Source: Lytechinus pictus (Eukaryota). From it: DNA of 64,000 nt. A program made the translations under genes and the position numbers. The notes beneath the pieces are model-generated. The model saw only the letters and a list, made by a program, of their open reading frames with translations. It was not told the DNA's origin and made no database searches. Shown piece by piece: positions 14,816 to 37,473 of the stretch (position 1 is its first letter; each line of letters opens with the position of its first letter). The stretch covers positions 6,572,001-6,636,000 of the forward strand of contig NC_087247.1 of the NCBI RefSeq assembly GCF_037042905.1, read 5' to 3'.

Positions 14816-16552
14816 CTTGAATTTATTTGTCTGGGATACCGAGTGTGATATTTTGACGCGAGATATGGTGATTTAGGTAAGAAAGTTTCACCTTTTATAA
14901 TTTATTCGAGATTTTGCCCATGTTGCCGGATGATTTTGTAGTTGGGAGTGAGCTAGTGAATGTGTGGTGTACATGTCTAGAGTGTGTTGGTGATTTCAGT
15001 GGTATATTGCTGAGTCTGCTTAACGTGCCGCACACCGAACCCTGGCTACGCACCAACGCAGTTACTCTAGTCTAGATTCTATTCTTGATGATCAAGTTTT
15101 AATAATTTGTCTGATTGCTCTTTTGCCTTGGAGCTCTTGACTAGCCTGGAGGCGTCTGGGGAGTGAAAGTAATGTATACAAACCATGTATACCATGTATA
15201 CAAACATGGTGCAAAATGCTCATCAACAGTTTTTACTCTTTCCTTTTTAATAGTTACTCCAACAGAAAATAAAGCATATTACATTCATTCAACTGTTACA
15301 AAAATTATAAATAAATGAATTAATTATATTTCATATTAAATGATGTACTGCACAGGTTCTTGTAAACCCCCAAAGATTACACTATACAGTAGTATGTGTG
15401 TTACTGTACTGTTTTTTTTTGCAAGAAATTCAATTAAATCTAACATTCATAAACTTTTCCTTTTGACCTACATGTATTAGAGACCTGCATGTCGGAAGAA
15501 ATACTCCTCTTTGATGTTTGATGTTAGATTTTTCACCTTTGATATAACATATTAGACTTCTTATTAATATATATGTACATGTATTATGTTATTAATGTAT
15601 TATGTTATTAATCACAGTAAAATGTGCGACACATGGATAAACAATTATCCAGCAACCCTTAGGTGGGCAGAGGCATAACATGGAATGTAATATCCAGTCC
15701 AGCATGGGTGCACCAATGGCAAATAAGGTTTTGGCCATTTCCCATACGGTTAATCTCTAATTTCTTTGCTCTATTGCAGGATTTCGAATTACCTATGACA
15801 ACACACAAAAAATATTGTGAGGCGGCATGAAGGTAGCAAGAAGGCCCGAGATGGGATTAATATATGGACGACCATATTTGCGGCCGAAGATATGGTACCA
15901 TTTACGGATACTTGTGATGATAGTGATACCACAATACCTGCATCACAAATCCCATTGGAGCACCTCCTCCAAACACAACAGGATCTTAGTGCACTGCATA
16001 AAGCCATGCTGTTTCAAATACAGAGAATACTAGCTGAGAATTTTGCGACATTCAGAAGGCCCAAAGCTCAAGATCGACAACATCAAAATGAATCCTCCGA
16101 GAAAACCAAACTGGTAGGTGATCTTCTTATAATAATGATATTGGTCATGCATCTATATGAAGTCATATGTAGATGTACTGTAGAGGAAGAGGTGAGGGGT
16201 CCAAAACATGCAAAAGGAAATGGTACTAGGAACTTATCTACAAAGAAATTGAAAAGACAACTACCATCATCCCATCAAGCTTGCCGCTCCCACCTTTCTT
16301 TACCTTTCCTTCTCCCAAGTCCCTACCCTCCTCTCTCCCGTCTTACATGTACATGTACATGTATATGTGCAATATGCACAATCATAGCTTACTAATAAAG
16401 GGAACAAAGATGTCACATTCTATTTCTAATTCAAAGTAATATAAAAACTTTGTTTTTTCTCCCAACGATGATTGACTTAACCTTCAACAGCTGAAATCCT
16501 CACTAACTTACGATGATCCAATATGAGCAAAATAATGAATTATTCAAAATAA

Positions 16553-16916
16553 TTCTAATAATAATAATAATAGCTTTAGTTTTTATATACATGTAGCACT
16601 TTACCGGAACGACTTGCTTTACAGCATACATGTATCATTGCCTTTGCCATTGAATTCATTTCAATCCCACCCAAAAAATGCACAATTTCTACTCTCTAGG
16701 GAGCATTCCTTGCATTTATCGCACCCTCATAATGCTGGCAAATTCAAATACACAACTTTCGCATCCTACCTGATATACATTTAGCACCTGAGTCAAGATT
16801 GGCAAACTGGGGATTACATGTACCGCTTTCCAAAGGACGCTAGACCGCGGTGGGATTCCAACGTACGACCTTCTGTTTGCAAGGTGTGAGTCAGAAGCAC
16901 TACACCATGACTCTTC
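16553..16916 (-). mobile_element. tRNA-derived SINE
   Basis: Minus-strand head with A-box-like TGGTGTAGTG and B-box-like GTTGGAATCC, ending in a (TAT)n tail. Confidence 0.6.
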
Positions 16917-17999
16917 TACAATTAATAATTTCTTGAAATAAAATACAAAAGAAAAAAAATGTCTTCCTAATTTTCATACTTGCTTTATTGCTCACTTCAT
17001 TGCTTTGTATACCTACAGTACATGTAAAAAATCTTGCATTTATACTTTACATTTGGGTTGGATAAAACTTTGTGTAAAATATGCTTTTTATTTATAACAT
17101 CCACATGTACTTATTGTTATGGTCAACTTGGTTTTTCATCAGTTCAATGTCAATGAAGAAAAAAGGTTCTTTAGGCCTTCACAAAAAAAAGACAGGGAAG
17201 ATGGACTATAAAAGACAGAAGTATGCAAAAATCAGATCATTCTTACATGCCTTAAAAACCCTCTAATATTTCTTTATCAAAAATCTTCAGGCCCACATTG
17301 GTGCAATGGAGGAGAATCCTTCTAAATGTGGAGGGGTCATTGCAGTGATGAAACAAATCAACAAGTATGTTCCCCAAAGAGAAGATGACATCTACCCAAT
17401 TATTCTACACAGCGATGGAGGCGCATTCATTCATGGAGTAAATGGGAAACGAGCGCTGGCACACCTGGCAAATTCTATGGACAGGCTTGATGGCCTCATT
17501 CCCACTGCGCAAGAGTTCCATAAACGAGGAATTTTGATAACGGTAAGTACATGCATCAGTAAGAAGATTCACCAACTTTTTTTGGGGGGTTAACTCCAAA
17601 GCCTAAGTTTTACAAAGTGAAATATTCATATTAATACAATTTAGTGACTTTTTTATATTAAGACCTACCATAAGAATTTCAAAAATAATGTTTGTTTTAC
17701 ATTGGCTGCTTCATTCACATTTAAGTCCTTACATTGGACTTAAATGTGAATCAAACCTTGTATAAATGTTAAAGTATTTTGTATAAAAGTAGAAAATATA
17801 CACAAGAGAGGTGAAAGTTATAAAACAAATCTGACAAGAGGAAAAAAGAAAATGTTGTGATATGCAACAAATACTTGACCAAATTAAATTAGATTTTTTA
17901 TTATTTGCAGGTCAACAGATCAGACAATAAAAACAATTATCTTACATATCTTGAAGAGTCAGTACTGGTTTTTCCTGAATTTAATCAAAAGAAAATCCA

Positions 18000-20900
18000 A
18001 CTTGGCTGGCAAGTGGCAATGATTCCTTAAAGTCCATAATGCTGGCGATGATGAAATTGATGTTGAAACATGATGGATAATTGCACTCACTGTAGTGATC
18101 ACTGACGTCGGGATGAACGGACGTGTGTGACGAAGCCTCCGCCAAGCATACAATTAACAATTGTCCAGATAATCTTGACCATTATGGGTGGACCCGATAG
18201 ACCAAGACGAGGAAAGGGGGGATCGTTGGCCGATAACTCCCCTAAGCCCAAGCGTCCCTCTCCCGCTGACAACTCTGCTGCCCAAAATGACGACACTGAC
18301 GGCGACGACTCCACACTATCCAATGCTATCCAAGCAGCCATCAATAAACTACTCACCAATGAGAATTTTATATCTAAGCTGGTTTCGGCTATCAAGACAA
18401 AGCTGCTGGATGAGATATGTGAATCTCTGAGATCGGAAGTGAGAGACTCGTTGAAATTTGACATTGACAACGCCAACGACAAAATGGCGTTGCTCGAAAA
18501 ACGAGTAGATGTCGTCGAGGACGCCATGGACGAAGCAGAGCAGTACTCTCGAAGAAACTGCCTAATCTTTGCTGGTATCAACGAGACGCAAGACGAGGAC
18601 GTGGAGAGGAAAATAGTGAACATATGTAAAGAGGACCTCGGGGTAACCATCAATGAAAGCGACGTCGACAGATGCCACCGACTCGGGAGCCCAAACAACA
18701 AAGGACAGAAAACTCGCAAACAACATCGGGACGTCATCGTAAAATTCACGAACTATCGGAAGAGAGACTCCATCTACAAGGCTAGATTCAACCTGCGAAA
18801 GTCATCGAGTAAGTCAAAGCATATTTATATCAATGAAAGCCTAACACAGAAGCGGAATAAACTATATTGGAAAGTCAAGAAAAGTCTCAGAAGCAATGAT
18901 TACAAACTCTGGACACAAGATGGTAAAATAATTGTCAAAAAACCAAACGGCGAAAAGGTGTCTATTGCCAGTGAAAAGGACCTGTCCAAAGTAAACTGAA
19001 CACTCGAACTCTATACAGACTGTCAAAGCTAGAGGTAAATCGTGGTGTTTATTGTCATATAGCTTTGTCTTTGTTGAATGTTGTTGTTTTCTTTATTTTT
19101 AAAGTATTGTTATTTTGTTTTATGTGATTTTGGTTAACGACGCTCATTCTTCGTTATTAACCTTCTTGTTTCATAGTATATTTCATGTTATTGCATGTTA
19201 TAGATTATCCCAGTACCGAAGAGTGGTGAGTCAAGTGACATCGGCAATTATAGACCGATCTCACTTTTGTCATGTCTATCAAAAATACTTGAAAAGGCAG
19301 TACATGCCCAACTTTACGATTATTTACAAGAATACAAACTGCTGTCACAGCGCCAATCGGGTTTTCACCCCAAGCACTCAACCGCAACTTGTTTAATTGA
19401 AATAACTGACTACCTGTTAAATAATATTGATTGTGGCTCAATAACAGGTGCGATATTCCTTGATCTGAAAAAAGCCTTCGACGTAATATCTCACGAAATA
19501 TTGTTTAATATCAAAAATGCCATATTATGGTATAACATCGGTCGAATTAGACTGGTTCTCATCATACCTAACAGATAGACAGCAATGTGTCTCGTTTCAA
19601 GGCGTCCAGAGTGATTTTTTACAGATCTATTCAGGTGTGCTGCAAGGGTCAATTTTGGGCCCCCTGATGTTTTGTTTATTTCTAAATGATATTTGTAACT
19701 TGAAATTTAGTAATCAAATCAAGATTGCACTTTACGCTGACGACACGGCTCTGTTTTGTAAAGGAAATAATTCAAAAAGCACTCAGAAAAAATTACAAAA
19801 ACATTATGATTTACTGTGCAAATGGTTTGAAATAAATAATATGGAAATCAATGCAAAGAAAACCAAAGTGATGGTTTTTGGGACGAAACATAAAACTAAG
19901 AATCTAAGTATGAATATCTTTCACGGAAGAGAATACCTTGAGAATGTTTCTGATATCAAATATTTAGGGGTAACCCTTGAACAAAGTCTAAGTTGGACAC
20001 CGCACGTCTTTAATCTAACTAATAAAATCAACCGGGCTATTTCATGCATTAGAAGGATTAAATGTTACTTGAATCGACGCATTCTCAAGCACCTTTACCA
20101 TGCTCTTGTTCTCCCACATATAGATTATTGTTCAGTTGTTTGGGGTAAGTGTAAAAAGAAAGATTTGCTCAAATTACAGAGGACGCAAAACAGATATGCT
20201 AGATTAGTCATCAATGCAGACTATCGTACCACAAAGGATTTCCTTTTAAACAATCTTCAATGGCAAAGTATTGAAACTCGCATCAACTACCACTACTCTA
20301 TTTTCGTATTCAAAATACTCAATAATCTAGCCCCACACTATTTAGAATCTTTTGCCTGTAAACGACCACTCTTTTATGTTACTCGTCATTCTACCCTAAG
20401 TCCTCTATTTATTCCGAAACCTAGGACAGAATTTAAAAAGCGATCTTTTTCTTACATCGCTCCAAATATCTATAATAATCTACCGACTCATATACGTACG
20501 GCAACTTCACTCCAAATGTTTAAAAGTCAAATCAGGCCACTCTCTTTATTGTTTTAATGCATGCACTGGTCCTATTTATAATGTCTTTTGCCATGATGTT
20601 AATATATTTTGTTTTTGTTTTAATGTTATCGTGACGTTTTTTTTTCTTTTTGGTTTTATATATTTGTGATACTTTACGTATTTTTTGTTTGATTCATTTT
20701 ACCTTTTGTTCTATTATTTGTCCTTATATGCTACCTGCTTTATGCCATTTTATATCAATAATTTTCAAAGTCTTTTAAATTGTCAATTTTATAACTTATT
20801 TATAAATATAAATTTTACTTAGTTTAATTTTAGTCACACGTTATTAAAGTAATTTCCTTTATTTCTATGATTTTGTCTTGATTTTAATCTAGGTTTTTAA

Positions 20901-21109
20901 TTTTTGTTTTGATTCATTTAATGTGATATCATTGATATGTCATGTAATTTTGATTGTGTATTGTATTTTACTTTATATTAATTGTATTTCATTTATTTTG
21001 TAAATCTTTCTATGTCTACAGGGCTCTTTTGTAAAGCAGGCCTTTGGGCTCTGAAAGGACTACCCTGTTTTTAAATAAAACTGAATAAATAAATAAATAA
21101 ATAAATAAA
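18000..21109 (+). mobile_element. L2-group (Crack/Daphne-like) LINE with intact ORF1 and internally deleted ORF2
   Basis: ORF1 18184-18999 has a coiled coil followed by EQYSRRNCL, DRCHRLG, IVKF, IYINESLT and WTQDGKI. RT remnants at ~19220-20557 include GNYRPISL, QSGF, DLKKAFD, QGSILGP and YADD, with a frameshift near 19510. Tail is (AAAT)n. The 5' boundary is approximate. Confidence 0.85.
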
Positions 21110-24100
21110 TGTCTGTGAAGATGAAGTTGTTGATGATAAACACTCAATTTTAGCAAGCCATTAGTTGACAAATATTGTTTACAACAGGCTGATGATCTGG
21201 ATGAGAACTGAGAATTCCTGTCAAAATAACTGCAAACAGTTAATTTATGGTGTGCAAATATTTCCACAGAAGTTAATTTTATATTCTACGTGAAAATAAG
21301 CTGTGCTCTGACATGAAGTCTACCATTAATTTCTGAGTTCTAATCTGATATGATCCTTGAAGAAAATGCAAGCTTTCATTTATAACTTTCCACTATTCTG
21401 AAAGCTTCTAGTTTTGTCTTTAAAAATAACACTCTCTTTTTTTTTCTAGAGCATTACCTTTCTAGAAGACTCTTGGATGACCTCAGTGAAATTAATGCAA
21501 ACAGCATTTAACCCTACAATGTATTGTCCTTTTTTTTCCACTGCTGGATCTTTATTGTAAATTACAGAAATAACAGACATCATTACACTGTTCTCATTAC
21601 ATATGCCTGCACATAGCAAAGCAAAGCTTAAAGGGACATTTAGACTTTGTGAACAGCTGATTTTAAAACATTCTCAAACATAGATGAAACATGTATGAGA
21701 ACCTGTATTTTTCCTCCTAACCCCCCCCCCCAAAAAAAAAAAAAAACGATAAAAAACTCTGCTTTAGACAGAAGACAGTAGCAATTTATTAGCCTCATTT
21801 TAAGAACCATTACTAAGACACATTCAGCTTATGCCCAGTTTTCCTCAATTAAAGAAGTCTGTTGTATGTAGGCCTACATCTTCCTTTTCTCTTACGTATT
21901 TTAATAGGACTCGATGAAGATGCTCTACTCGGAGGCATCAGCGAGGTGTCCAGGTACTCTCGCGAACATCAAAGAGGAGTATTTCTTCAGACATGCAAGC
22001 AAGGAAGCGATGAAAAGCTTCAACCACACAGAGGAATTTCTGCATTTCAGTGTGGAAGCCTTCATTGTTCTCCTCGCAATGGACATCATGGAAATCAAGA
22101 CGGTAAATTGTGAAAACAAATGAGTACCAAAGGGATGATGTCACAAATATGTTATTTCTTCAATTTCTGCATTTTTGATAGCATATTTTGGAAGTCAATG
22201 TACTGTCGGCATGATTCCAAAAATTAAAAATCAGGCCAATGATTGATTTTAATGGGGCTAATCATAATATAAAAGCTCCTTCAGCACCTCGCAAGAATTA
22301 TTTGTGTGCTATATACAAATCCTATATTATTATTTACCAGCAGCAATTACACATGGCAGCGCAGCACAGGGTATATCATTTTTGTTTATCAAGGTGTGGT
22401 ATAAAAGTATAACGTTAACATGCAAAGAGGGAAATTTGATGATGTCCCATTTGAAAAATAGAGAATTCTTTATTTCCAACAAAAAACAAAATTATAAATA
22501 CATGTGTATGGGGTAGCACCATTCGTATGGCACGATTTCTAATAGCTGCCACTTGTTGACAATATCATAACAACTTTTAATGAGACAAGTACAGGGCCTG
22601 GTGAAATCAAGGTTTGAAAACTGTGATAATGCTACAATGTAGGCCCCGAGTCATTAAGTTTGTTATGAAAAAAATGTTAAAATCCTATAAATAAACAGGT
22701 GGCTGGTGGTGGTTAGAAAAGAGAAACCCTTCCTTGCTGAAATGTCACATTTAGTACATGTACCTTCACATGGATGAAATAACCATCAATGTTCTATATG
22801 ACGTGCATTATGGATTTTAATATACAGTACGACATAAATAGATTCATTATTCATGATTTCTATCATTCTTGGGCCATCAATTGGTATAGAATTTATAACT
22901 TTTCTAAGAATTTTGTAATTTGTGCATAGCCCACTGTTTATTTCTTAATTTATTCTTAATGTGTACCCACAGGTAGATTTTCATGTTAATTGACCGAGTG
23001 TGACATGAACTGAAAGTACCATCATCTTTCATCAACTTTTAAGGAATTATTTCCTTACTTCCACCAATAGGGTGCCAAAATCGATAAATTTTCATGCATT
23101 TAAAAGGCATGTACATATTGACTCAGCCCTAACCTGTAATAACATGCACACTTGTTCACTTTCTTCATCCAGATTGATGAAATTCCCAAGGGATATCCCA
23201 CAAATGGCCCACCACACACAAAATCAGCATATCAACTGAAAGTTGCCATGGAACTACTCCAAAGGATATGGAATCCTATTCCGCAGGATGCCATAGACTC
23301 GGTCACTTCAACACCTAGTAACTCTTCAAAAGTAGTTGCAGCAAATCAGCCGTATCCATACTGCTTTTGCAAAAAGGGTAAATTTGCATTATGAAAAGCG
23401 TTTTGTAAAGGTGGAATAAGAATAAGTTACATATACATGTAGCTTGCCTTAGAAAAATCCCAACTTTATTTAACAGATGATTTAGGTAGAATTTTCAGCT
23501 ATATGCTTGTTTGATCATCTTTTTTCAACTCTTTTTGTTGGCTTAGTACAGGTATTTCTTAGTTCTACGAGTTCATACTTGCCAATCAGACCAATCCCAA
23601 TTTAGACAAATGATAAGTTTTGATGTCAAACTGGTTCTAATAAATGCAGAAAAAAATTCATTACATGCTAATATAGTTTTAAAAAATAAATCCTTGGAAA
23701 GATACAAGAGCTATTACTACCTTGGTTATATCAAATGAAACATAGTCTGTGATTACTTCATGTATATTCAACAAACCTTCAATAATAAATTTATTTTGGG
23801 AACAAACTTGACATCAGGGAAAACTCTTTTTGACACAGAAAATATATAGAAATTATATGGTATTTTCATTTCCCCCCCCCCCCATTTCTGACATCTGTCA
23901 GAGACAGATGAGCCTATGGTAGGCTGTTCGAACGACATGTGCCGAAACGGGCTATTTTTTCATCTCAGCGAAGTTGGACTGACCCCACAAACCGTTCCAC
24001 AGAAAGACGATTGGTATTGTTCCGCTGAGTGTCAACAGACCAAAAGATCGCCCCTCTGCATCTGTGGAGTCAACAAGAAGGGCCACCCAAAAGTGGTGTG

Positions 24101-25130
24101 CTCTAACAATAACTGTCCCTATGGAAAAGTCTTTCATCTCAGCTGCCTGAGATTAAGACAAATGCCAGGTATTTCTTTCTAATTGTAGAATTGAAGTAAA
24201 ATTAACCATGAAAACTTTGTCTTGTCCCATAAGAAGAGGCCTACAGCAAAGAGTTTGATTTAATCTAAATGCAACTAAATTAAGCAAATGCTGCTTCTGG
24301 TATGTTGAAATCAAGTTGCCTTTAATTAATATTAATATCGAAGTAGTTGCAGGAAGCACTGATTTCATGAGAAAGTCTGTAAACCATTGTCATAACATTA
24401 TCCAAGAGATATATAAGGACACATAAATTGAACTAAGATTCAAATCAAGCACATTACGCAATCAATCATTCAAGAATCCTTTTGGCACATATTTTCTCCA
24501 TACAAAGACACTTCATCATTTAACTGGAATCGGTATGAGATTTTACCACAACTGGAATTTGTGTGTACAACTGCAACTCTTTATGTAACAGTTACCTCAT
24601 CATGGATTTGTATGGACATATTTTACTAGTGCTGTGTCATCAACGTTCAATCAAATAATCAAAATCCTTGGGGGAACAATAATTATGTTTAGAGGTATGT
24701 ACAGCTGAGATGTGAAATAACCAAAAATTCTGATATTGAAGAACATTTCAGAATTCAACAGTACCTTTCTAAAAATATATAGAATATCACTCTTTATTAC
24801 ACTAGATGTAGAACTACTAAAGGAAAAGGAGTTACATGTATCTCAATAAATCCCTCCTTTATACTCATATTTCATGTACAGACCCTGATTGGGAATGTCC
24901 AGTATGTACAAACGACACGCCAGAAGCAAGACGAGATGGAATATTACAGTATTCCTTGTGTGTTATATGGGAGGGTCTGCAAGACCTTGTTAGAAGAGAC
25001 GCCATCAGGCACAATAATGGGCCACAAATGTTGGCATTCTGGCAAATAGACATGGGTCAGTTCTGGTCTGCTGGCCATAAGAATTACCTGCTCATGGGCC
25101 ACAGATTACTCACAAGTAAGTTACATAAAA

Positions 25131-26700
25131 CACAATCATTCGACTGAAACAGCCTTGTTAAAGGTTGCAAACGATCTCTTGTTAGCAGCTGACAGTGGAC
25201 TTGAAGCATGTCTGGTACTATTAGACTTCTCGTCTGCATTCGACTGCCTGGATCACAAAACACTCTTCAAGCGACTTGAAACCACTTACGGCATAAATGG
25301 ATCTGCGCTTGAGTGGATTAAGTCTTATCTGTGTGATCGTCTCCAGAAAGTAACAGTAAGGGGTTCTTTGTCACAGACATTCCCTCTCCGATGGGGTGTC
25401 CCACAAGGGTCGGTTGTGGGCCCTTTGCTTTTCACCCTCTACACTGGACCTCTTTGCGATGTGATTGCTTCCCATTATGGCATACATCACGTTATGTATG
25501 CTGATGATACCCAGCTGTATCTTGTTATGAGAGCAGATGACGACGACAGAAATGGTGCCATATATAGACTCACAGAGTGTTTACGTGATATCAAGTCTTG
25601 GTCCGTAACCAACAACTTGAAGCTCAACGAAGCAAAGACTGAAATGCTGCATATATCATCCCGGTTCAGGCAGCAGCGTGATGATCTCTCTCCCCTTGAT
25701 CTGTCGGGAACGTGCGTTCAGAATTCGGATTTTGTCTGTGATATCGGTGTGATCTTAGACAATCACCTTTCTCTTGCACAACACATCCGCAACAAGTGCA
25801 GGACTGCTTCTTGGGGTATAGCTAGAATTGGCCGAATCCGCAAGTACCTCAACACTACATCTACTGAAAAGCTCATTCATGCATTTGTTTCTTCCCATCT
25901 GGATTACTGTAATAGCCTCCTAGCCGGTCTTCCCCAATCCCATATTGCTCCCCTCCAACGGATCCAGAATACAGCAGCCAGATTGGTTACCCGGACTAAA
26001 AACCATGAACACATCACCCCAATCCTGAATTCTCTACATTGGTTACCAGTTCAGCAACGCATTGTCTACAAAATTCTCCTTCTAGTCTACAAGTGTATCC
26101 ATAATCAAGCTCCCTCTTATCTACAGAACCTTGTCTCCCTCCGATCCTCATCAGTTTCATCCGCATCCAGACATCTCCGCTCCCACACCACTGCACATTT
26201 TCAACTGCTGCCCGGACCAAGAACTAAAACCAACTACGGTGACAGATCCTTCTCAGTTATTGCCCCGAAGCTCTGGAACAATCTCCCCATTAATGTACGT
26301 GAGGCATCATCGTTAGAACTGTTTAAGTCTCTCCTTAAAACCCACCTCTTTTAATAAGTTTCACTTGCCTATTTTTCGCTTCTTTTGTTCTGAATGAAAT
26401 TATCCCCCTTAGTTAATTGGCATTATCATATTGTGTTCAGATTTTTAAGTCGGATTGTAAGCTTAGTTATTAGGATTATTTAGATTTACATACATGATTA
26501 TCAACCCGTTATATTTAAGTTGTGTATTACCGATTATCTCTTTATTTGTACGTATAATTAATTTTTCGTAATTTTGTTTTCACTTTCAGTTCCTTTGTTG
26601 TTCTTTTTCTGAGATATCTTGTATTTTCCCCCTTCTTTCTTAGCGCTTTGAAACTTTTGTATAAAGCGCTCTATAAATTTGGTATATTACTATTATTATT
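25131..26700 (+). mobile_element. 5'-truncated L2-type LINE (RT C-terminal half, open frame)
   Basis: Motifs HSTETALLKV, DFSSAFD, GVPQGSVVGP, YADDTQLY, LHWLPV and GDRSFS, with a (TAT)n tail. Flanked by ATAAAA on both sides. Absent from the duplicate copy at ~33960. Confidence 0.9.
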
Positions 26701-28182
26701 ATAAAAAAATGTTTTGTAGTGTGCACAATAAATAATGTGCATGCTTTTTTATGCTTATAATATTTAGAACACATCTTCAATCAAGCTTATTCCAGAGAAC
26801 TAATTCCACAAAATAGACCCTACAGGTGCATTTATATTTGAGCATACATTATCTTTTAATTCAAGCTCTTAAAAACTAGAATTATCACTGAAAGTGACTT
26901 CACCAGCCCACCTTTAATTGGCAGGGGTATGAAATACATGTACTTGTATGCTGCGTTCACAAAAAGAACAAACTCGTCTATTCCCAGCCAGTTTACTATA
27001 TCTGCTAAACGGACTGGGACAAATTAACGAGTGTTGGTGTCTTTCTATCTATGTGATCTTAAGCCAAAGGCCATGGATTATGCACATTATCTAGATACTT
27101 TACTTTATTTAACTCATAAGAAAGGTGTTTATATCTACTGAAATTTGTACAGAGACCACCTCATATAAGTTAAAGATGAAACATATTAAAAAAAAAGAAT
27201 CTGATGGGTTCAAAGTAAAGAAATGTTCAGATTTTGGATTTCTATGAAATTATCTGAAAAGACATACACTTCTCATGCATTTTCATTTTTCAAAGGTATG
27301 GCAGGCTGGGAGAAGGCCAGAATAAGACACGACCTTCAATGGAACCGAACCGCGAATCTCCAAGGGATCAAGGGAAAGTGTCTCCCACTTGACAGAGTGT
27401 GCGAAATCCTTGACAAATCATCGAAAGGTATGTAATACACATACATTTTGGTAATGTTCCCAGACTGAGGAACTACATGTACATGTACTACCAAATTTTC
27501 TTGTCAGATATTTGTAAATAATCACATATACTGACCATATCAATTCAACATATATCAAGACTGAAGACAGCCCCTGACTGTACACCTCCAACAGACTTTC
27601 ATAGAAGCCAGCGTAGGAAGTACATGAGGCTGATGGGTGATTTTGCACTCATGACAGCCCAATAGCCCCTAAAATTCCCCCAAGATGCATGCTTTGGTGA
27701 GACCATTCTTTCTAGAGTCACTCCAAGATCCATTCCAAACAATATTCAAGATTTAGACAAATCAATAATCTAACTGCGGCAGAAGAATATCTGTTTTTAT
27801 TGCACAATTTTCACTCCTAAAGGTAACCCTTCAAAAGAAAGAAATAGCACTCCCCCCCCAAAAAAAAAAAAAAAAAAAAAAAATCAGAAATCACCCTGTG
27901 TGGAAAAGAAAAATGGCCCTTTCAAAGTAATTATTATTTCCTACCATAAAAGAAGGTCATGCTGAAAACACCAAACTTCCTCATCATTTTATGGCTCTTT
28001 AATCCAGTTTATTTTATGTGATATACATTTTAAAATTTCAACATTTGCTACAATGACAGGCAATTTGGCAAGATCAATGACACCAAATTTAATGAAAATA
28101 CATGAATTTAGTATGGGATAATGGGTCCATTGTACAAAGTAGTGCTCTCTTTCTATACCTTTCATTAATATTAAACATGTAT

Positions 28183-28940
28183 ATTTGGGCGTAATTTTTG
28201 ACAAGTCTTTGAACATGGATGCACATATTTCGTCTACCTGCAAAAAGTGCTTTCTATCACTTGCGAAACATAGCGAAGATTTGCAGATTCTTCTCTGAAC
28301 CAGATGCTGCAAAAGTCATCCATGCCCTTGTCACGTCGCGAGTGGACTGCTGTAATGCCCTGCTTGCTGGTCTACCACATTCTTCGGCCTCAAGACTACA
28401 AAGAATACTCAACAACGCTGCCCGAGTTCTTAAAGGAGTGGGCAAATACAAACATATTACTCCAACCCTAAAAGAACTCCACTGGCTTCCTGTGTCGAGA
28501 AGAATTGAATACAAGATCCTGACATTAGTGTTCAAAGCTCTTCACGATGCAGCACCTACTTACATCAAGGATCTCCTTGTCGTGAAGCAGTGCCACTATT
28601 CTTTACGATCCTCCACATCTACCACCCTTGTGATTCCGCGTAGCAGGACCAAGCATTATGGAGATCGGGCTTTTAGCTATGTGGCCCCAGTTATGTGGAA
28701 TAGACTGCCAAGTACTATCAGGAATATGAACACTCTGAAGACATTCCAATCAAGTGTCAAATATTACCTATTTTTACAATCATATTAGTGAAGGCCATGT
28801 CTTTTCCTCATATGAATGTTATGTTTGATGATTTTAATTGTGATTATTTCCAATGTTTTTGTTTATTTAATATGTAGCGCCTTGAGTAATGATCCATTAG
28901 AAAGTGCGCATTAGAAATACTTATTATTATTATTATTATA
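28183..28940 (+). mobile_element. 5'-truncated L2-type LINE 3' end
   Basis: LGVIFD..., LHWLPV and YGDRAFS motifs with a (TAT)n tail. Confidence 0.85.
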
Positions 28941-30029
28941 TCACAGAAGAGGTCTTATACCCTGAAAGATTTCACTGGACATAACTTTTTATAAAGTACA
29001 TGTATCACATTGACTCTTTTCAGTGTGCGATTCAACAACCAATGACTTTTTTATCAGAGTTTGTAAAGTTCTTCTACTTTTAATAGGGGAATTTGAGAAG
29101 ACATTGACACCTTCCCAATTGCTCAAAAACATACAGACATGTGAACTGTATACCAACATTAAAAAGGGAAGAAGCATCATTACAAATATGGTGGATTCTG
29201 AAAGAGATGAGAAACATCTTAAGAAATAAAGACCTGTCACTTTGAAGAAATCACATCAATTTCAGAATCATCATAGAAAGATTTATAAAAATAAATAATA
29301 GGATTAATCTTCACACTTTAATGAATTCATACAACTTCAAAGAGATTCAAACAAAAGGGAAAATCATCAAGAATTTGCTGTTTTTATAGTACACACAAAA
29401 TATGTGTTTTCTATGGCAAAAAAAATTGCATCAGACGTTACCAATTTTACTTTTGTCTGAAAAGTGACATCCCTAAAATTGTGTTCATTGCTTTAAAAAA
29501 TATATTCCTAATACATGTACTACTAGTTACTAGTATATAATAGGCCTAATCGTATAAGCAATTTAATTCTGATTTTGACTCTTACAGGTGTCCTCTCAAA
29601 CAGTACAAAATACTCAGGAAAGAACCTCATCAGAGCCGGTGCTCTTGGAGGTCCAGAGTCTAGTCGATTTGATCAGTCCAAACTGTTGGCCTCAACTTCA
29701 AGAAAACACACTATCAGTACCACATACAACAAGAGGAAGATGAAGACCAAAAGAGAGCTTATTCCACACTTTGTTAAGTTAATGTCTTCAAAAGGATTGT
29801 TCTCTGTGAAAGCGGGAAGGTCTCACAAGGCGTTTCCAAACTTCAAGCGAACGCAACCTCTTGAACGCTTGGGGAAGCTAAAGTCAAGTTTAATGGAAGC
29901 CTCCGTGAAATTAGACTGGGAACGGCCAGACATTCAACTAGAGGAACAGGTAAAAGAATACTTATTGACCAAGTATTAAAGGGAGTAGAAAAATCATCAC
30001 CATAAAGAGTAGAAAAATCATCACCATAA

Positions 30030-33000
30030 AATGTGGATGAAAATTATATGGCATTATATGTTGAAACTCAATGAATACATGTGCTGATTGGGAGTCAAAT
30101 GTCATCGTTAAAAGATTTTATTTTGCCTGTGAGACTGCATTTTGCTTTCCTTCATGACAATTTATGAATACTCCAAAGGACAGGCGAGAACACGTTTACT
30201 AAGCTACATTTCGAAAGATTCGAATGAAGTCTTTATGTTAAGCAGTCATGCTCTATACATCTTGATATTTCTTTTCCATATCATATGTGTTAAATGTGAT
30301 AAACATGCATATAAAGATTTTCTGATGGAACAGGTTGCTGAGGTTAGTTTATATATAGGTTCCAAACAATTGTCTCCAATATTTTTTCATGGATACATTT
30401 GCTCATTGCAGTTAGTATGGTTACATGTAAGTCAGGATCAATATTATATCCAATTGTGGCTATTACAAGCAGCAACAACAGAGATATCTCAATACTATCT
30501 CTTTAATTTATACTTCCAAACAATATTGATTCATGATATTAAATGTTTTTATTTCAAAGGAATGGATAGTAATACATGTACTCTAATTATTCATTTATAC
30601 CTGGAATACAGTAGCTTAGTACAAATTTACTTTACAAGTCAGGTTTCAGAAGGTCAATGTTTTGTTCAATATTTGGAGTTAAAAGCAAGGAAGATTGAGA
30701 AATCTCACATCTGCCATTTCAGATATTTTTTAAAGTCATGGTTCCAAGTAATGTTGATATTACTCTTTCAGAGTCAGGGTTCAAAATCTCAATGTCATAT
30801 TCTATGCTCGGAATCAGAAACAAATATAATGGAGGAGTTTCAAAATTACTTTTCAAGGCTTTCATTGAAGTCATACCTTCAAGCAATATTCAAAGTTTTT
30901 CTTCAAAATGTGAATTTTTTTATATTTTGAAAGGATTGAGAGTAACCTTTTATTAGAAAATGTATACTTAAAAAGGTATGCTTGTGAAATTAAAACCAGA
31001 ACAATATATTTTTCTAAGTTGTACGGAAGTTCTAGTATTTACAATTGGAATACGTGTATCCCTACATTATGTGATGAAGTTTAGCTGTAGCCATTTCCAA
31101 TGCACTGGTATGCCTGCCTGGTTGTTGAACATTAAAGCTGCCTTTGTTATGCAAAGTCCTTGTGAAATTGACATTCTGAAATATTTGGAGCCGCGAAACA
31201 TCTGTGTTAACTTGCCTTGCTCCCTTACTCAATTCAAAATGAATCAAATGAATTATCCAACCACTCTCTTTTATGATAGATTTTGTATGGGTGTCTTCAT
31301 AATGTTGTTGTCATTTGTTGACTGTAGCTATTTACGAGTGATTCTATGACTGTGAAAGTATTATCTTTTAACTGCCGTGGACTAGGAAATGCTACGAAAC
31401 GAAGAGATATCCTTGCATATATAAAATCTAAAGGAGCACAGATATATTGTTTACAAGATACTCATTTTGTTCCTGAAATATGTCTTTCAGTGAAGAGGGA
31501 GTGGTTGGGTAAATGTTATTTTTCCTGTAACAATTCTCGCTCGAGAGGAGTAGCTGTTATGTTTGACAAAAATTTTGTTGTAGAAGTAAAAAAGGAAAAA
31601 ATAGATGAGAAAGGTAATTTTATTATACTGAGTCTTTGTATTGGAACGTTGCAAGTAACATTAATTTCATTATATGGTCCAAATGACGATACTCCTGGTT
31701 TTTTTGATGATCTAAAAAGATATACCATTGAGTTTGATGACCCGCACATAATATTTTGTGGGGATTGGAATCTGGTGCAAGATTTTGATCTGGATACAAA
31801 GAAGCAAGGAAGAAGGTGATAGAATTGAAAAATGATTTGGATTTGGTAGACGTTTGGCGTGAACATAATGTAGGGATTCGAAGTTATACATGGAGACAGC
31901 CTACTCCATTAAAACAGAGTAGGCTTGATTATTTTTTGGTTTCCTCAGATCTCTTTTCTTTAATCACAAAAACAGAACATTTGTTTGGATATAAATCTGA
32001 TCATTCTATAATCAGCTTAGAATTTGAATTAGATAAGTACCAAAAATGTTTTACTTATTGGAAATTTAACAATGTTTTGTTGAAAGATGAGGAATATGTG
32101 GACGTTATTAAAAGAAAGATAAGAGAAGTAGTATTACAATATGCAGACGAAGAATCTATACAAGGTAAAGAATATGAAGAGATGAGAAAGGAAGATATCT
32201 TGTTTTCTATCAATGAACAGTTGTTTTTTAATACTCTTTTCATGGAGTCGAGAAGTTCTACTATTCTATATTCGGTGAGAAGAAAAAGAGAGAATAAGGA
32301 AGAAAAAAACAAGATTGAGAAGGAAATTTTTAAATTAGAAACCAATATGATATCAGAGGAAAGAACTTCAACTATTGAAAAGATACGTATTTTGAAAGAA
32401 CAATTAGAAAGCATTATTGAAAATGAGCAGCAAAATTCGATTAAGTATAACAGGATACAAGAAATGCAATTTGGAGAAAAGCCTTCAAAATATTTTTTGA
32501 ATTTAGAAAAACAGAGATCAGTGGAAAAGACAATTATAAGATTGATCGATAAAAACAACTGTTTAATTGATCAACAAGAAGATATTTTACAAGAAGTATA
32601 TCTTTATTTTAAGGATTTGTATACATTTCAACCAGCAGTATCAGAGGCCGAAAGATTGTTTGCTATGATTCCTTTGAATAAAGTAAGGATATTTACACCA
32701 CAAGAAAGTGAGGTTTTAGAAGGGGATATACGTTATTCAGAAATACTTGATGCAGTTAAACAGATTAAAATTGGTAAATCGCCCGGTCAAGACGGCTTTA
32801 CAGCAGAATTTTTAAAGTATTTTATTAATGATATAGGAATTTATTTGTGGCGAAGTGTCAAAAATGCTTATTTGACTGGTGAATTATCTCCTTCACAAAA
32901 CTTAGGTATTATAACTTTAATTCCTAAAGGTAATAAGCCCCGTCGTTTTATTAAAAATTGGAGACCGATATCTCTTCTTAATGTTGTATACAAAATTTTA

Positions 33001-33154
33001 TCTACATGTCTTGCAAATAGGTTACGAAAGGTATTATCAGTAGTCATTCACACAGATCAGAAAGGATTTTTACCTGGTCGTTTTATTGGGGAAAATATTA
33101 GAATAATATACGATATCATTGCTTTAGCGGAAAAGCAAAATTTACCTTGTACTT
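30030..33154 (+). mobile_element. Tx1/L1-like LINE fragment (APE endonuclease and start of RT), 3'-truncated
   Basis: 31346: SFNCRGL, LQDTH, SRGVA, YGPN, GDWN. Then SRLDYF, SDH, WKFN, GEKPSKYF, KSPGQDG, NWRPISLLN and DQKGF. Frame break near 31800. The upstream ~1.3 kb is assigned tentatively. Confidence 0.85.
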
Positions 33155-35131
33155 AGTAGTTGCAAGAAGCACTGATTTCATGAGAAAGTCTGTAAACCAT
33201 TGTCATAACATTATCCAAGAGATATATAAGGACACATAAATTGAACTTTGTGAAATCATTCAATCTAAGATTCAAATCAAGCACATTACACAATCAATCA
33301 TTCAAGAATCCTTTTGGCACATATTTTCTCCATACAAAGACACTTCATCATTTAACTGGAATCGGTATGAGATTTTACCACAACTGGAATTTGTGTGTAC
33401 AACTGCAACTCTTTATGTAACAGTTACCTCATCATGGATTTGTATGGACATATTTTACTAGTGCTGTGTCATCAACGTTCAATCCAATAATCAAAATCCT
33501 TGGGGGAACAATAATTATGTTTAGAGGTATGTACAGCTGAGATGTGAAATAACCAAAAATTCTGATATTGAAGAACATTTCAGAATTCAACAGTACCTTT
33601 CTAAAAATATATAGAATATCACTCTTTATTACACTAGATGTAGAACTACTAAAGGAAAAGGAGTTTAACATGTATCTCAATAAATCCCTCCTTTATACTC
33701 ATATTTCATGTACAGACCCTGATTGGAAATGTCCAGTATGTACAAACGACACGCCAGAAGCAAGACGAGATGGAATATTACAGTATTCCTTGTGTGTTAT
33801 ATGGGAGGGTCTGCAAGACCTTGTTAGAAGAGACGCCATCAGGCACAATGATGGGCCACAAATGTTGGCATTCTGGCGAATAGACATGGGTCAGTTCTGG
33901 TCTGCTGGCCATAAGAATTACCTGCTCATGGGCCACAGATTACTCACAAGTAAGTTACATAAAAAAATGTTTTGTAGTGTGCACAATAAATAATGTGCAT
34001 GCTTTTTTATGCTTATAATATTTAGAACACATCTTCAATCAAGCTTATTCCAGAGAACTAATTCCACAAAATAGACCCTACAGGTGCATTTATATTTGAG
34101 CATACATGTCAAACATTATCTTTTAATTTAAGCTCTTAAAAACTAGAATTATCACTGAAAGTGACTTCACCAGCCCACCTTCAATTGGCAGGGGTATGAA
34201 ATACATGTACTTGTATGCTGCGTTCACAAAAAGAACAAACTCATCTATTCCCAGCCAGTTTACTATATCTGCTAAACGGACTGGGACAAATTAACGAGTG
34301 TTGGTGTCTTTCTATCTATGTGATCTGAAGCCAAAGGCCATGGATTATGCACGTTATCTCTCTTACTTTTCTTTATTTAACTCATAAGAAAGGTGTTTAT
34401 ATCTACTGAAATTTGTACAGAGACCACCTCATATAAGTTAAAGATGAAACATATTAAAAAAAAAAAGAATCTGATGGGTTCAAAGTAAAGAAATGTTTAG
34501 ATTTTGGATTTCTATGAAATTATCTGAAAAGACATACACTTCTCATGCACTTTCATTTTTCAAAGGTATGGCAGGCTGGGAGAAGGCCAGAATTAGACAC
34601 GACCTTCAATGGAACCGAACTGCGAATCTCCAAGGGATCAAGGGAAAGTGTCTCCCACTTGACAGAGTGTGCGAAATCCTTAACAAATCATCGAAAGGTA
34701 TGTAATACACATATACATTTTGGTAATGTTCCCCGACTGAGGAACTACATGTACATGTACTACCACATTTTCTTTTCAGATATTTGTAAATAATCACATA
34801 TACTGACCATATCAATTCAACATATATCATGACTGAAGACAGCCCCTGACTGTACACCTGCAACAGACTTTCATAGAAGCCAGCGTAGGAAGTACATGAG
34901 GCTGACGGGTGATTTTGCACTCATGACAGCCCAATAGCCCCTGAAATTCCCCCAAGATGCATGCTTTGGTGAGACCATTCTTTCTAGAGTCACTCCAAGA
35001 TCCATTCCAAACAATATTCAAGATTTAGACAAATCAATAATCTAACTGCGGCAGAAGAATATCTGTTTTTATTGCACAATTTTCACTCCTAAAGGTAACC
35101 CTTCAAAAGAAAGAAATAGCACTCCCCCCCC

Positions 35132-35163
<32 letters not shown>

Positions 35164-37133
35164 GAAATCACCCTGTGTGGAAAAGAAAAATGGCCCTTTC
35201 AAAGTAATTATTATTTCCTACCATAAAAGAAGGTCATGCTGAAAACACCAAACTTCCTCATCATTTTATGGCTCTTTAATCCAGTTTATTTTATGTGATA
35301 TACATTTTAAAATTTCAACATTTGCTACAATGACAGGCAATTTGGCAAGATCAATGACACCAAATTTAATGAAAATACATGAATTTAGTATGGGACAATG
35401 GGTCCATTGTACAAAGTAGTGCTCTCTTTCTATACCTTTCATTAATATTAAACATGTATATTTGGGCGTAATTTTTGACAAGTCTTTGAACATGTATGCA
35501 CATATTTCGTCTACCTGCAAAAGTGCTTTCTATCACTTGCGAAACATAGCAAAGATTTGCAGATTCCTCTCTGAACCAGATGCTGCAAAAGTCATCCATG
35601 CCCTTGTCACGTCGCGAGTGGACTGCTGTAATGCCCTGCTTGCTGGTCTACCACATTCTACAAAGAATACTCAACAACGCTGCCCGAGTTCTTAAAGGAG
35701 TGGGCAAATACGAACATATTACTCCAACCCTAAAAGAACTCCACTGGCTTCCTGTGTCGAGAAGAATTGAATACAAGATCCTGACATTAGTGTTCAAAGC
35801 TCTTCACGATGCAGCACCTACTTACATCAAGGATCTCCTTGTCGTGAAGCAGTGCCACTATTCTTTACGATCCTCCACATCTACCACCCTTGTGATTCCG
35901 CGTAGCAGGACCAAGCATTATGGAGATCGGGCTTTTAGCTATGTGGCCCCAGTTATGTGGAATAGACTGCCAAGTACTATCAGGAATATGAACACTCTGA
36001 AGACATACCAATCAAGTGTCAAATATTACCTATTTTTACAATCATATTAGTGAAGGCCATGTCTTTTCCTCATATGAATGTTATGTTTGATGATTTTAAT
36101 TGTGATTATTTCCAATGTTTTTGTTTATTTAATATGTAGCGCCTTGAGTAATGATCCATTAGAAAGTGCGCTTTAGAAATACTTATTATTATTATTATTA
36201 TATCACAGAAGAGGTCTTATACCCTGAAAGATTTCACTGGACATAACTTTTTATAAAGTACATGTATCACATTGACTCTTTCCAGTGTGCGATTCAACAA
36301 CCAATGACTTTTTTTATCAGAGTTTGTAAAGTTCTTCTACAAAGTCTCAGAATTCATGCAGTGCGTGTTTTAATAGGGGAATTTGAGAAGACATTGACAC
36401 CTTCCCAATTGCTCAAAAACATACAGACATGTGAACTGTATACCAACATTAAAAAGGGAAGAAGCATCATTACCAATATGGTGGAATCTGAAAGAGATGA
36501 GAAACATCTTAAGAAATAAAGACCTGTCACTTTGAAGAAATCACATCAATTTCAGAATCATCATAGAAAGATTTATAAAAATAAATCATAGGATTAATCT
36601 TCACACTTTAATGAATTCTTCAAAGAGATTCAAACAAAAGGGAAAATCATCAAGAATTTGCTGTTTTTATAGTACACACAAAATATGTGTTTTCTATGGC
36701 AAAAAAAATTGCATCAGACGTTACCAATTTTACTTTTGTCTGAAAAGTGACATCCCTAAAATTGTGTTCATTGCTTTAAAAAATATATTCCTAATACATG
36801 TACTACTAGTTACTAGTATATAATAGGCCTAATCATATAAGCAATTTAATTCTGATTTTGACTCTTACAGGTGTCCTCTCAAACAGTACAAAATACTCAG
36901 GAAAGAACCTCATCAGAGCCGGTGCTCTTGGAGGTCCAGAGTCTAGTCGATTTGATCAGTCCAAACTGTTGGCCTCAACTTCAAGAAAACACACTATCAG
37001 TACCACATACAACAAGAGGAAGATGAAGACCAAAAGAGAGCTTATTCCACACTTTGTTAAGTTAATGTCTTCAAAAGGATTGTTCTCTGTGAAAGCGGGA
37101 AGGTCTCACAAGGCGTTTCCAAACTTCAAGCGA
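33155..37133 (+). repeat. Segmental duplicate of ~24342-29850 (three transposase exons: 33716-33949, 34566-34697, 36871-37133)
   Basis: Near-identical sequence including introns and the L2 fragment (35460-36200). It lacks the 25131-26700 LINE. Confidence 0.95.
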
Positions 37134-37158
37134 AGTTTGGAAACGCCTTTTTATTACA

Positions 37159-37386
37159 GAGAGTGCTGCCTCTATCTCATTCAGGCCAATCAACATCAGC
37201 CCCCCATAACCCACCACGGATGACAATTTTGAAGATGACACACTGCTATCAGCCTCGGGTTCAGATGCCTCTGGCTCAGAGGATTCAGACACCAACACCA
37301 TGACCACTCTGCCATATCTGGATCTAAATCATTTAGATGACTGTGACTCAAGGTCTGATTCAGAATCTCACTCCGATTCTCACTAG
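37159..37386 (+). pseudogene. Probable terminal exon with acidic/Ser-rich tail; partly duplicated at ~38900-39040
   Basis: TTTATTACAG acceptor, then SAASISFRPINISPP*PTTDDNFEDDTLLSASGSDASGSEDSD...DSESHSDSH*, with one in-frame stop. Confidence 0.45.
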
Positions 37387-37473
37387 ATGTCACGTTGAAA
37401 ATGCAATATCTTTGATTTAAATGACTAAAATCTATTAATTACTTTTACAAAAAAGTGTAAGTTGAATCAAAGT

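Follow-up and report, generated by a model that had tools for sequence, protein, structure and literature searches.

A probable AcademH-type transposase relic with PHD fingers in the genome of Lytechinus pictus

One animal sublineage of the AcademH DNA transposons reportedly carries a PHD finger within its transposase. AcademH elements have a target site duplication (TSD) of 9 or 10 bp together with a helicase, and AcademX elements a TSD of 3-4 bp together with a nuclease (PMC10045372). As of 2017 Pfam had no model for the Academ nuclease, and rust fungi were the group richest in Academ (PMC5751038); Academ has also been reported as abundant in bivalves, and the Pfam domain DUF6589 as enriched in rust fungi. 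Neither DUF6589 nor Academ occurs in the supplements of PMC10799480. Described here is a spliced gene for a PHD-bearing DUF6589 protein found in the window, a stretch of DNA of 64,000 nt at C3:6,572,001-6,636,000 of the 811-Mb Lytechinus pictus genome. The locus probably represents a dead and incomplete gene for the transposase of a DNA transposon of AcademH type, from the sublineage with PHD fingers.

The window protein agrees with what is reported of that sublineage in being a predicted DDE transposase with an inserted PHD module, in its animal host and in its low copy number, and it bears two PHD fingers. Among its relatives the likeness to AcademH extends to a helicase gene within the element and a 9-bp TSD, whereas the window copy has no helicase, no terminal inverted repeats (TIRs), no TSD and no N-terminal region. 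With the P element, Hermes (hAT) and RAG1 it is predicted to share an RNase H-like core in which a large helical insertion separates the second Asp from the Glu, but sequence identity is only 7-10%, and there are no PHD fingers in the insertion domain of these three. The PHD finger that reads H3K4me3 in V(D)J recombination is carried by the partner protein RAG2 and not by the recombinase.

Gene model of the window locus

Short open frames on the + strand, lying between 15.8 and 30 kb, encode pieces of a single protein. They form a gene of eight + strand exons (15780-29979, Table 1), the borders of which were set by homology first and then checked in the DNA; every exon is preceded by AG and followed by GT, with the acceptor of exon 1 ending in cag at 15779 and its donor starting with gtaggt at 16114. 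The first three introns are in phase 0 and the last four in phase 1. The joined exons make up 669 codons (669 aa), and exons 2-8 (558 codons) contain no stop. A 1-nt frameshift within the A6 run at 15807-15812 is the sole break in the 669-codon frame, and since the paralogue at C2:49.25 Mb encodes this peptide, FRITYDNTQKNI, without a change of frame, the run in the window is taken to be short by one base. The codons of the catalytic residues, D at 15797 (YDN), D at 17414 (HSDGG) and E at 27403 (DRVCE), all lie within conserved motifs of the family.

A profile hidden Markov model (HMM) was built from 70 foreign proteins, taken from other loci and species and with the rows of the window excluded. 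It matches all eight exons colinearly, with E values from 1e-27 to 6e-7, and consecutive ranges of the model meet at the splice sites (141-243, 244-327, 328-394 and so on). Residues 1-649 of the joined window model align end to end with proteins of 740-1000 aa at 28-30% identity (E 1e-94 to 1e-98), the full-length matches including proteins of Branchiostoma, Patiria, Saccostrea, Pinctada and others. These open reading frames (ORFs) are pieces of one spliced gene, and more than chance. A Pfam scan of single exons gave only weak matches, to DUF6589 with 15.5 bits at best (E 0.007, cut-off 27 bits) and a PHD-like one (E 0.005); matches to Olduvai, HECA and MIZ on single exons were judged spurious.

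A preliminary description of this DNA had placed the three catalytic residues at exactly these coordinates, and its proposal of eight exons that splice in phase is borne out by the GT-AG borders, the matching phases and the 669-aa product. Comparison with the paralogue likewise confirms the 1-nt deficit that it had seen in the A run. The span given there, 15780-37390, is too long: the gene ends at 29979, and the region from 30 to 37.4 kb holds a tandem duplicate and no further exons.

Table 1. Positions and content of the window gene, its tandem duplicate, associated LINE (long interspersed nuclear element) fragments, and related copies elsewhere in the L. pictus genome. HMM ranges refer to the foreign profile; coordinates without prefix are those of the window.
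Feature	Position	Strand	Content	Match
Exon 1	15780..16113	+	First catalytic Asp (YDN, 15797); frameshift 15807-15812	HMM 141-243, E 1e-13
Exon 2	17291..17542	+	Second catalytic Asp (HSDGG, 17414); GT-AG, phase 0	HMM 244-327, E 1e-19; Pfam DUF6589 E 0.007
Exon 3	21908..22102	+	Alpha-helical insertion domain begins	HMM 328-394, E 3e-20
Exon 4	23173..23377	+	Linker and first two Cys of PHD1 (YCFC)	HMM 392-462, E 6e-7
Exon 5	23902..24168	+	Remainder of PHD1, most of PHD2	HMM 465-545, E 7e-24
Exon 6	24882..25115	+	Last two Cys of PHD2; best-conserved helices of the insertion domain (RRDAIRHNNG...)	HMM 537-627, E 1e-26
Exon 7	27296..27427	+	Catalytic Glu (DRVCE, 27403), aligned to DLxxExxN	HMM 615-672, E 2e-13
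Exon 8	29588..29979	+	C-terminal domain, TAA stop; end matches the end of homologues	HMM 705-781, E 1e-8
Intron 2	17543..21907	+	LINE-swollen: ORF1 18106-18996, reverse transcriptase 19204-20554	RVT_1 E 2e-17 and 4e-16
LINE reverse transcriptase fragment, intron 6	25131..26700	+	In duplicate A only, missing from copy B	RVT_1 E 3e-24
LINE 5' part between duplicates	31328..33153	+	Endonuclease and start of reverse transcriptase	Exo_endo_phos E 8e-7; RVT_1 E 3e-8
Duplicate B	33155..37134	+	Copy of 24342-29851 (exons 6-8)	Two blastn segments, ~96.7% identity including gaps, ~1% substitutions
Exon copies of duplicate B	33716-33949, 34566-34697, 36871-37134	+	Copies of exons 6, 7 and 8; last ends after FPNFKR	98.7%, 97.7% and 100% identical
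Related copy	C7:40.16 Mb		Exons 5-8 only; one in-frame stop in the PHD exon	~50% identity
Related copy	C2:49.25 Mb		Exons 1-2, with stops	
Related copy	C3:40.93 Mb		Lacks 23390-24444; one frameshift	79-81% DNA identity including introns
Related copy	C4:10.2 Mb		PHD exon only	

The DUF6589-PHD family and the elements of its relatives

An exhaustive search returned 1572 relatives at E <= 0.001. Against DUF6589 (PF20231, cut-off 27 bits), a domain that is interrupted by the PHD module, homologues and paralogues reach 30-134 bits, and in P0002, P0011, P0028 and the C2 paralogue a PF00628 match near threshold (22-25 bits, cut-off 24) is nested within DUF6589. Homologues with both DUF6589 and PHD are present in amphioxus, hemichordates, echinoderms and bivalves and have intron positions in common; many of the DUF6589 homologues found here are bivalve proteins. 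Three motifs are conserved in the family alignment, WDNVQ, GDGLSxER and DLxxExxN, the second and third of which enclose one or two fingers with the ING pattern, YCxC..M.xC..WFH..C..W.C..C. Exons 4-6 of the window gene encode its two fingers, both of C4HC3 pattern, which lie between D17414 and E27403. In a quick tree, the window sequence falls within the PHD-bearing clade, apart from intronless DUF6589 ORFs of L. pictus, with 100% support; its terminal branch (2.31) is four times the median (0.52), and no protein retrieved is more than ~30% identical to the window lineage.

Among the full-length homologues nearest to the window gene is P0019, a protein of the amphioxus Branchiostoma lanceolatum, with which the window protein aligns over its whole length (E 1e-94). 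At least five intron positions of the window gene match those of the P0019 gene. These lie before NLGV / AHIG, after CxCxx in PHD1, before DPW in PHD2, after HxLLx(G/S), and after xxFK(E/G) on the 3' side of the catalytic Glu; the intron within PHD1 (after CxCKx) is found in the amphioxus and Diadema genes alike. Since the amphioxus gene has introns at these sites too, the introns of the window gene are old and not gaps left by nested insertions.

The AlphaFold model of P0019, made with 78 sequences, has a pLDDT of 88.8 and a pTM of 0.84. It places D100 in beta1, the first long strand, and D249 directly behind a strand, while an insertion of ~300 residues containing the fingers precedes the helix that bears E621; the D, D and E of the window protein align to these catalytic columns. 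The nearest structural neighbours in an exhaustive comparison were the P element transposase (Z 8.6, 351 residues aligned), Hermes (8.2), ISCth4 (7.6), Tn5 (6.5), RAG1 (6.0) and retroviral integrases, so that the top of the list consists uniformly of DDE transposases and integrases, at moderate Z values. When the finger region of a homologue was compared by Foldseek with the H3K4me3-bound fingers of ING1, ING2, ING4 and ING5, the probability was 1.0 and the identity 36-42%; the C4HC3 ligands and the pattern YCxC...M.xC...WFH..C are common to both. From this model the family enzyme is predicted to be a DDE transposase of RNase H fold, with one or two ING-type PHD fingers in a helical insertion domain. 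DUF6589, an 'unknown' of Pfam, can thereby be tied to the core of a transposase, in all probability the Academ one, with a fold nearest to those of the P element, hAT and RAG1.

These results are in keeping with the preliminary description, which had proposed a DDE transposase whose catalytic E is separated from the second D by tandem PHD fingers: the exons and homologues have DUF6589 homology, the fingers number two in the alignment and are of ING type by Foldseek, and the structure prediction that it called for, run on P0019, returned an RNase H-like fold with D, D and E on canonical elements. The expected pairing of DUF6589 and PHD in Pfam was obtained with homologues and paralogues, single window exons reaching the 15.5 bits given above at best. 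The likeness to AcademH that it had proposed was recovered in the amphioxus relative, in which a helicase partner, TIRs and a 9-bp TSD are all present.

This amphioxus element (L044:8177-20076; CM068861.1, ~66.9-78.9 kb) is 11.9 kb long and apparently young and complete. It carries the intron-bearing gene for P0019 (746 aa, with two PHD fingers) and, within ~240 bp downstream, a convergent gene for a 378-aa DEAD/Helicase_C protein. The element is bounded by perfect TIRs of 380 bp (L044 8177-8556 and 19697-20076) that begin TAGCCGTGGCGAC, and directly outside both ends is the 9-bp TSD TGTGTTCCC, in agreement with the 9-10 bp of AcademH (PMC10045372). In Diadema antillarum, a PHD transposase (P0030) and a helicase are found together in a 20-kb block that is present at L045:6698-26766 and L046:6724-26762, the two being 99.7% identical with unrelated flanks. 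The block begins with TAACC and ends with GGTTA, resembling the TAGCC of amphioxus. In L. pictus itself, the C16 copy has a convergent helicase fragment alongside.

In a working element of this kind, the PHD fingers would anchor the transposase on the tails of histone H3, with H3K4me3 the probable target because the ING-type cage is kept in most family members. Docking on H3 would favour active chromatin as the place of excision and integration, and the convergent RecQ-like helicase encoded downstream may assist cutting and joining. Having ING-type fingers within the insertion domain makes histone-guided transposition a concrete and testable idea, and the amphioxus element, with its perfect TIRs and its TSD, could serve as an experimental system.

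Decay of the window copy and alternative readings

Only the part from the catalytic core to the C-terminus survives in the window gene. Homologues have 95-450 residues ahead of the first Asp, which form a folded helical domain in the P0019 model, and no corresponding exon was found in the window by tblastn or by two HMM profile searches. Queries with the amphioxus, Diadema and L. pictus C16 helicases found no helicase in the window. There is also no TIR in the window, the inverted matches between sequences upstream and downstream of the gene being weak ones in dispersed repeats only, and as no termini were found, no TSD can be read. The proposed search for TIRs and a TSD was successful for the amphioxus element but not for the window copy.

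The fingers are altered as well. Two of the ten departures of the window protein at near-invariant columns fall in PHD1, where the invariant Trp is replaced by Phe and the zinc ligand Cys6 by Glu; unlike ING fingers and the rest of the family, in which the motif is WFH..C (cage Trp and Cys6, kept in 11 of 11 aligned homologues), the window reads FFHLSE. PHD2 has all eight zinc ligands but, in a further difference from ING, none of the Tyr, Met and Trp cage residues. No protein of the locus was recovered in two protein database searches, one exhaustive and one made with the exon alignment (the latter matched relatives of P0019), and a word-based protein search with a paralogue as query gave one match. 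No RNA run containing the locus was found, neither of the runs listed being recorded as RNA. The public contigs that could be placed here contained only repeats and a paralogous deleted form, 23389>24445, corresponding to the copy at C3:40.93 Mb, with no splice joints. The claim that the copy is decayed is upheld by the frameshift, by the missing N-terminal exons, helicase and termini, and by the mutation of PHD1 at two invariant sites, and most likely the window copy has no present function. To call the family probably uncharacterised, as the preliminary description did, overstates the case: a PHD-bearing AcademH sublineage is said to have been described by Kojima in Mobile DNA in 2020, and, going by that report, the locus is a relic of a described lineage and not a new system.

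Several points weigh against the interpretation as a dead AcademH-type gene. The assignment to AcademH draws on element features of relatives and on published descriptions, and no TSD was found at the ends of the Diadema units. The anchoring on H3 tails proposed above is deduced from fold and sequence only. The window copy keeps 52 of 62 near-invariant family positions (84%, compared with 82-97% in annotated homologues), its 558 open codons represent less decay than is typical of a fossil, and the sole frameshift, being in a homopolymer, may stem from an error of assembly.

It is unlikely, but worth weighing, that the locus is a living, domesticated host gene of PHD-DUF6589 type, with the frameshift an assembly error and the first exons undetected upstream. 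The canonical splice sites and the long open frame speak for this reading, but neither profile search found an N-terminal exon anywhere in the window. The 84% of near-invariant sites retained can be set against the loss from PHD1 of the invariant Trp and a zinc ligand, and the conservation of intron positions across phyla against the great length of the terminal branch. Relatives carry gene annotations that include isoforms, whereas the protein of this locus is absent from both database searches and no RNA run containing it was found (those listed not being recorded as RNA). Co-option does seem to occur in the family, given an array of five intact intronless ORFs without helicase in Patiria and an intact, annotated C2 paralogue in L. 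pictus that has Asn for the second catalytic Asp (both described below); the nearest copies of the window gene, however, are fragments on other chromosomes, with intron DNA ~79% identical, and the substitutions between its tandem duplicates look neutral.

A broader version, which we consider slightly less probable again, is that the PHD-DUF6589 genes include a conserved, intron-bearing host family of deuterostomes and molluscs, encoding chromatin-guided recombinases or nucleases that would read histone marks in cis, and that the window gene was living until recently, its frameshift being an assembly error. If true, this host family would be an independent parallel to RAG1 with the PHD finger of RAG2.

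The locus could also be a relic transposase in which the combination of DUF6589 and PHD belongs outside Academ, to a P-like, Kolobok-like or unnamed helicase-paired lineage, and this we regard as improbable. The likeness to Academ is drawn from element features, the nearest solved fold is that of the P element transposase, and KolobokH elements carry helicases too (PMC10799480); yet the 9-bp TSD and the helicase in the elements of relatives fit AcademH (PMC10045372), as reportedly does a PHD-bearing transposase in animals, the Academ nuclease had no Pfam model in 2017 (PMC5751038), and DUF6589 is enriched in rusts and common in bivalves, two groups reported to be rich in Academ. Finally, that the eight exons are chance open frames, as the shortness of the individual ORFs might suggest, is refuted by eight colinear profile matches with E values down to 1e-27 and borders at GT-AG sites, and has a negligible likelihood. 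As an AcademH-type fossil, the window locus matters little in itself.

Paralogues, derived repeats and the tandem duplicate

A search of the genome for copies, as suggested beforehand, did find related ones, but the nearest are all fragments with stops or deletions (Table 1), and none of these is an intact copy. Window 24445-25115 and C3:40.93 Mb agree better in the intron ahead of exon 6 (86%) than in exon 6 itself (76%). Exon 6 has 97 matches in its own genome, mostly to a derived satellite. At C10:13,050,000-13,154,000, ~100 kb of tandem repeats are spaced at ~1.4 kb, and as each unit bears a 45-residue fragment of exon 6 (76-80% identity), the array is a satellite built from a transposase exon. 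Tandem arrays of the PHD exon occur at C4:22,403,300-22,407,900 (period ~758 bp), and 121-bp units that repeat the second finger are found at both C16 copies (L023:8863-9344; L043:3582-5152).

The 3' third of the window gene has recently been duplicated in tandem, the original being referred to here as duplicate A and the copy as duplicate B. Between the two, ~1% of positions are substituted, at similar frequency in exons and in introns, and of the six changes in exons four affect the amino acid sequence. LINE fragments now occupy three introns of the window gene. The left border of duplicate A is also the precise start of a 42-bp stretch (24342-24383) that is very deep in public contigs, and duplicate B (33155) starts directly after the LINE 5' fragment; given this repeat and this fragment, the borders of the duplication coincide with repeat ends.

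Intronless DUF6589 ORFs of 1450-1854 aa are present in L. pictus at C12:11.73, C11:9.11 and 9.28, C2:69.72, C5:12.28 and 13.59, C20:3.21 and C9:5.12 Mb (L035-L038). In these long ORFs DUF6589 is central, and most of them, though not the one of 1689 aa, end in a CXC (TCR) domain. Identical scores for several of the copies suggest that they are probably active Academ-type elements. An XPG nuclease, the mark of AcademX, was detected in them neither by Pfam nor by PDB sequence search. A GDSL/SGNH-looking ORF lies upstream of the DUF6589 ORF in L035.

An intact, annotated paralogue of L. pictus, P0002 (XP_054769935.1, C2:53.05 Mb), encodes 957 aa with a single PHD finger, and the product predicted from the genome is 100% identical to the database protein of L. 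pictus. It has Asn at the position of the second catalytic Asp (YSN vs YGD), and the WDN motif is missing from it in the alignment; judged by these residues, P0002 may be catalytically dead yet retained. In Patiria miniata, five intact intronless DUF6589 ORFs of 1054-1137 aa are arranged head-to-tail with a period of ~4.4 kb and no helicase (L047:1025-21906), and may represent a co-opted gene cluster. Another B. lanceolatum protein, P0156 (561 aa, 57% identical to P0019), bears the database name 'ING4', probably a misnaming that arose from its ING-like finger. Annotators should be aware that PHD-DUF6589 transposon genes with conserved introns are filed as ordinary genes, one of them under the name ING4.

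Two further features of the window lie upstream of the gene. A high-copy element of ~575 bp at 14195-14768 matches on both strands and is foldback- or MITE-like (miniature inverted-repeat transposable element), with dozens of copies at 85-93% identity. On the - strand, the open frames at 8203-8475 and 11637-11924 resemble exons of a host gene of adaptin type, with predicted peptides such as ..KAVLVLHSFVVKCPHL.. and ..LIYCEMLGQPATFSYIHAIKMAQ...

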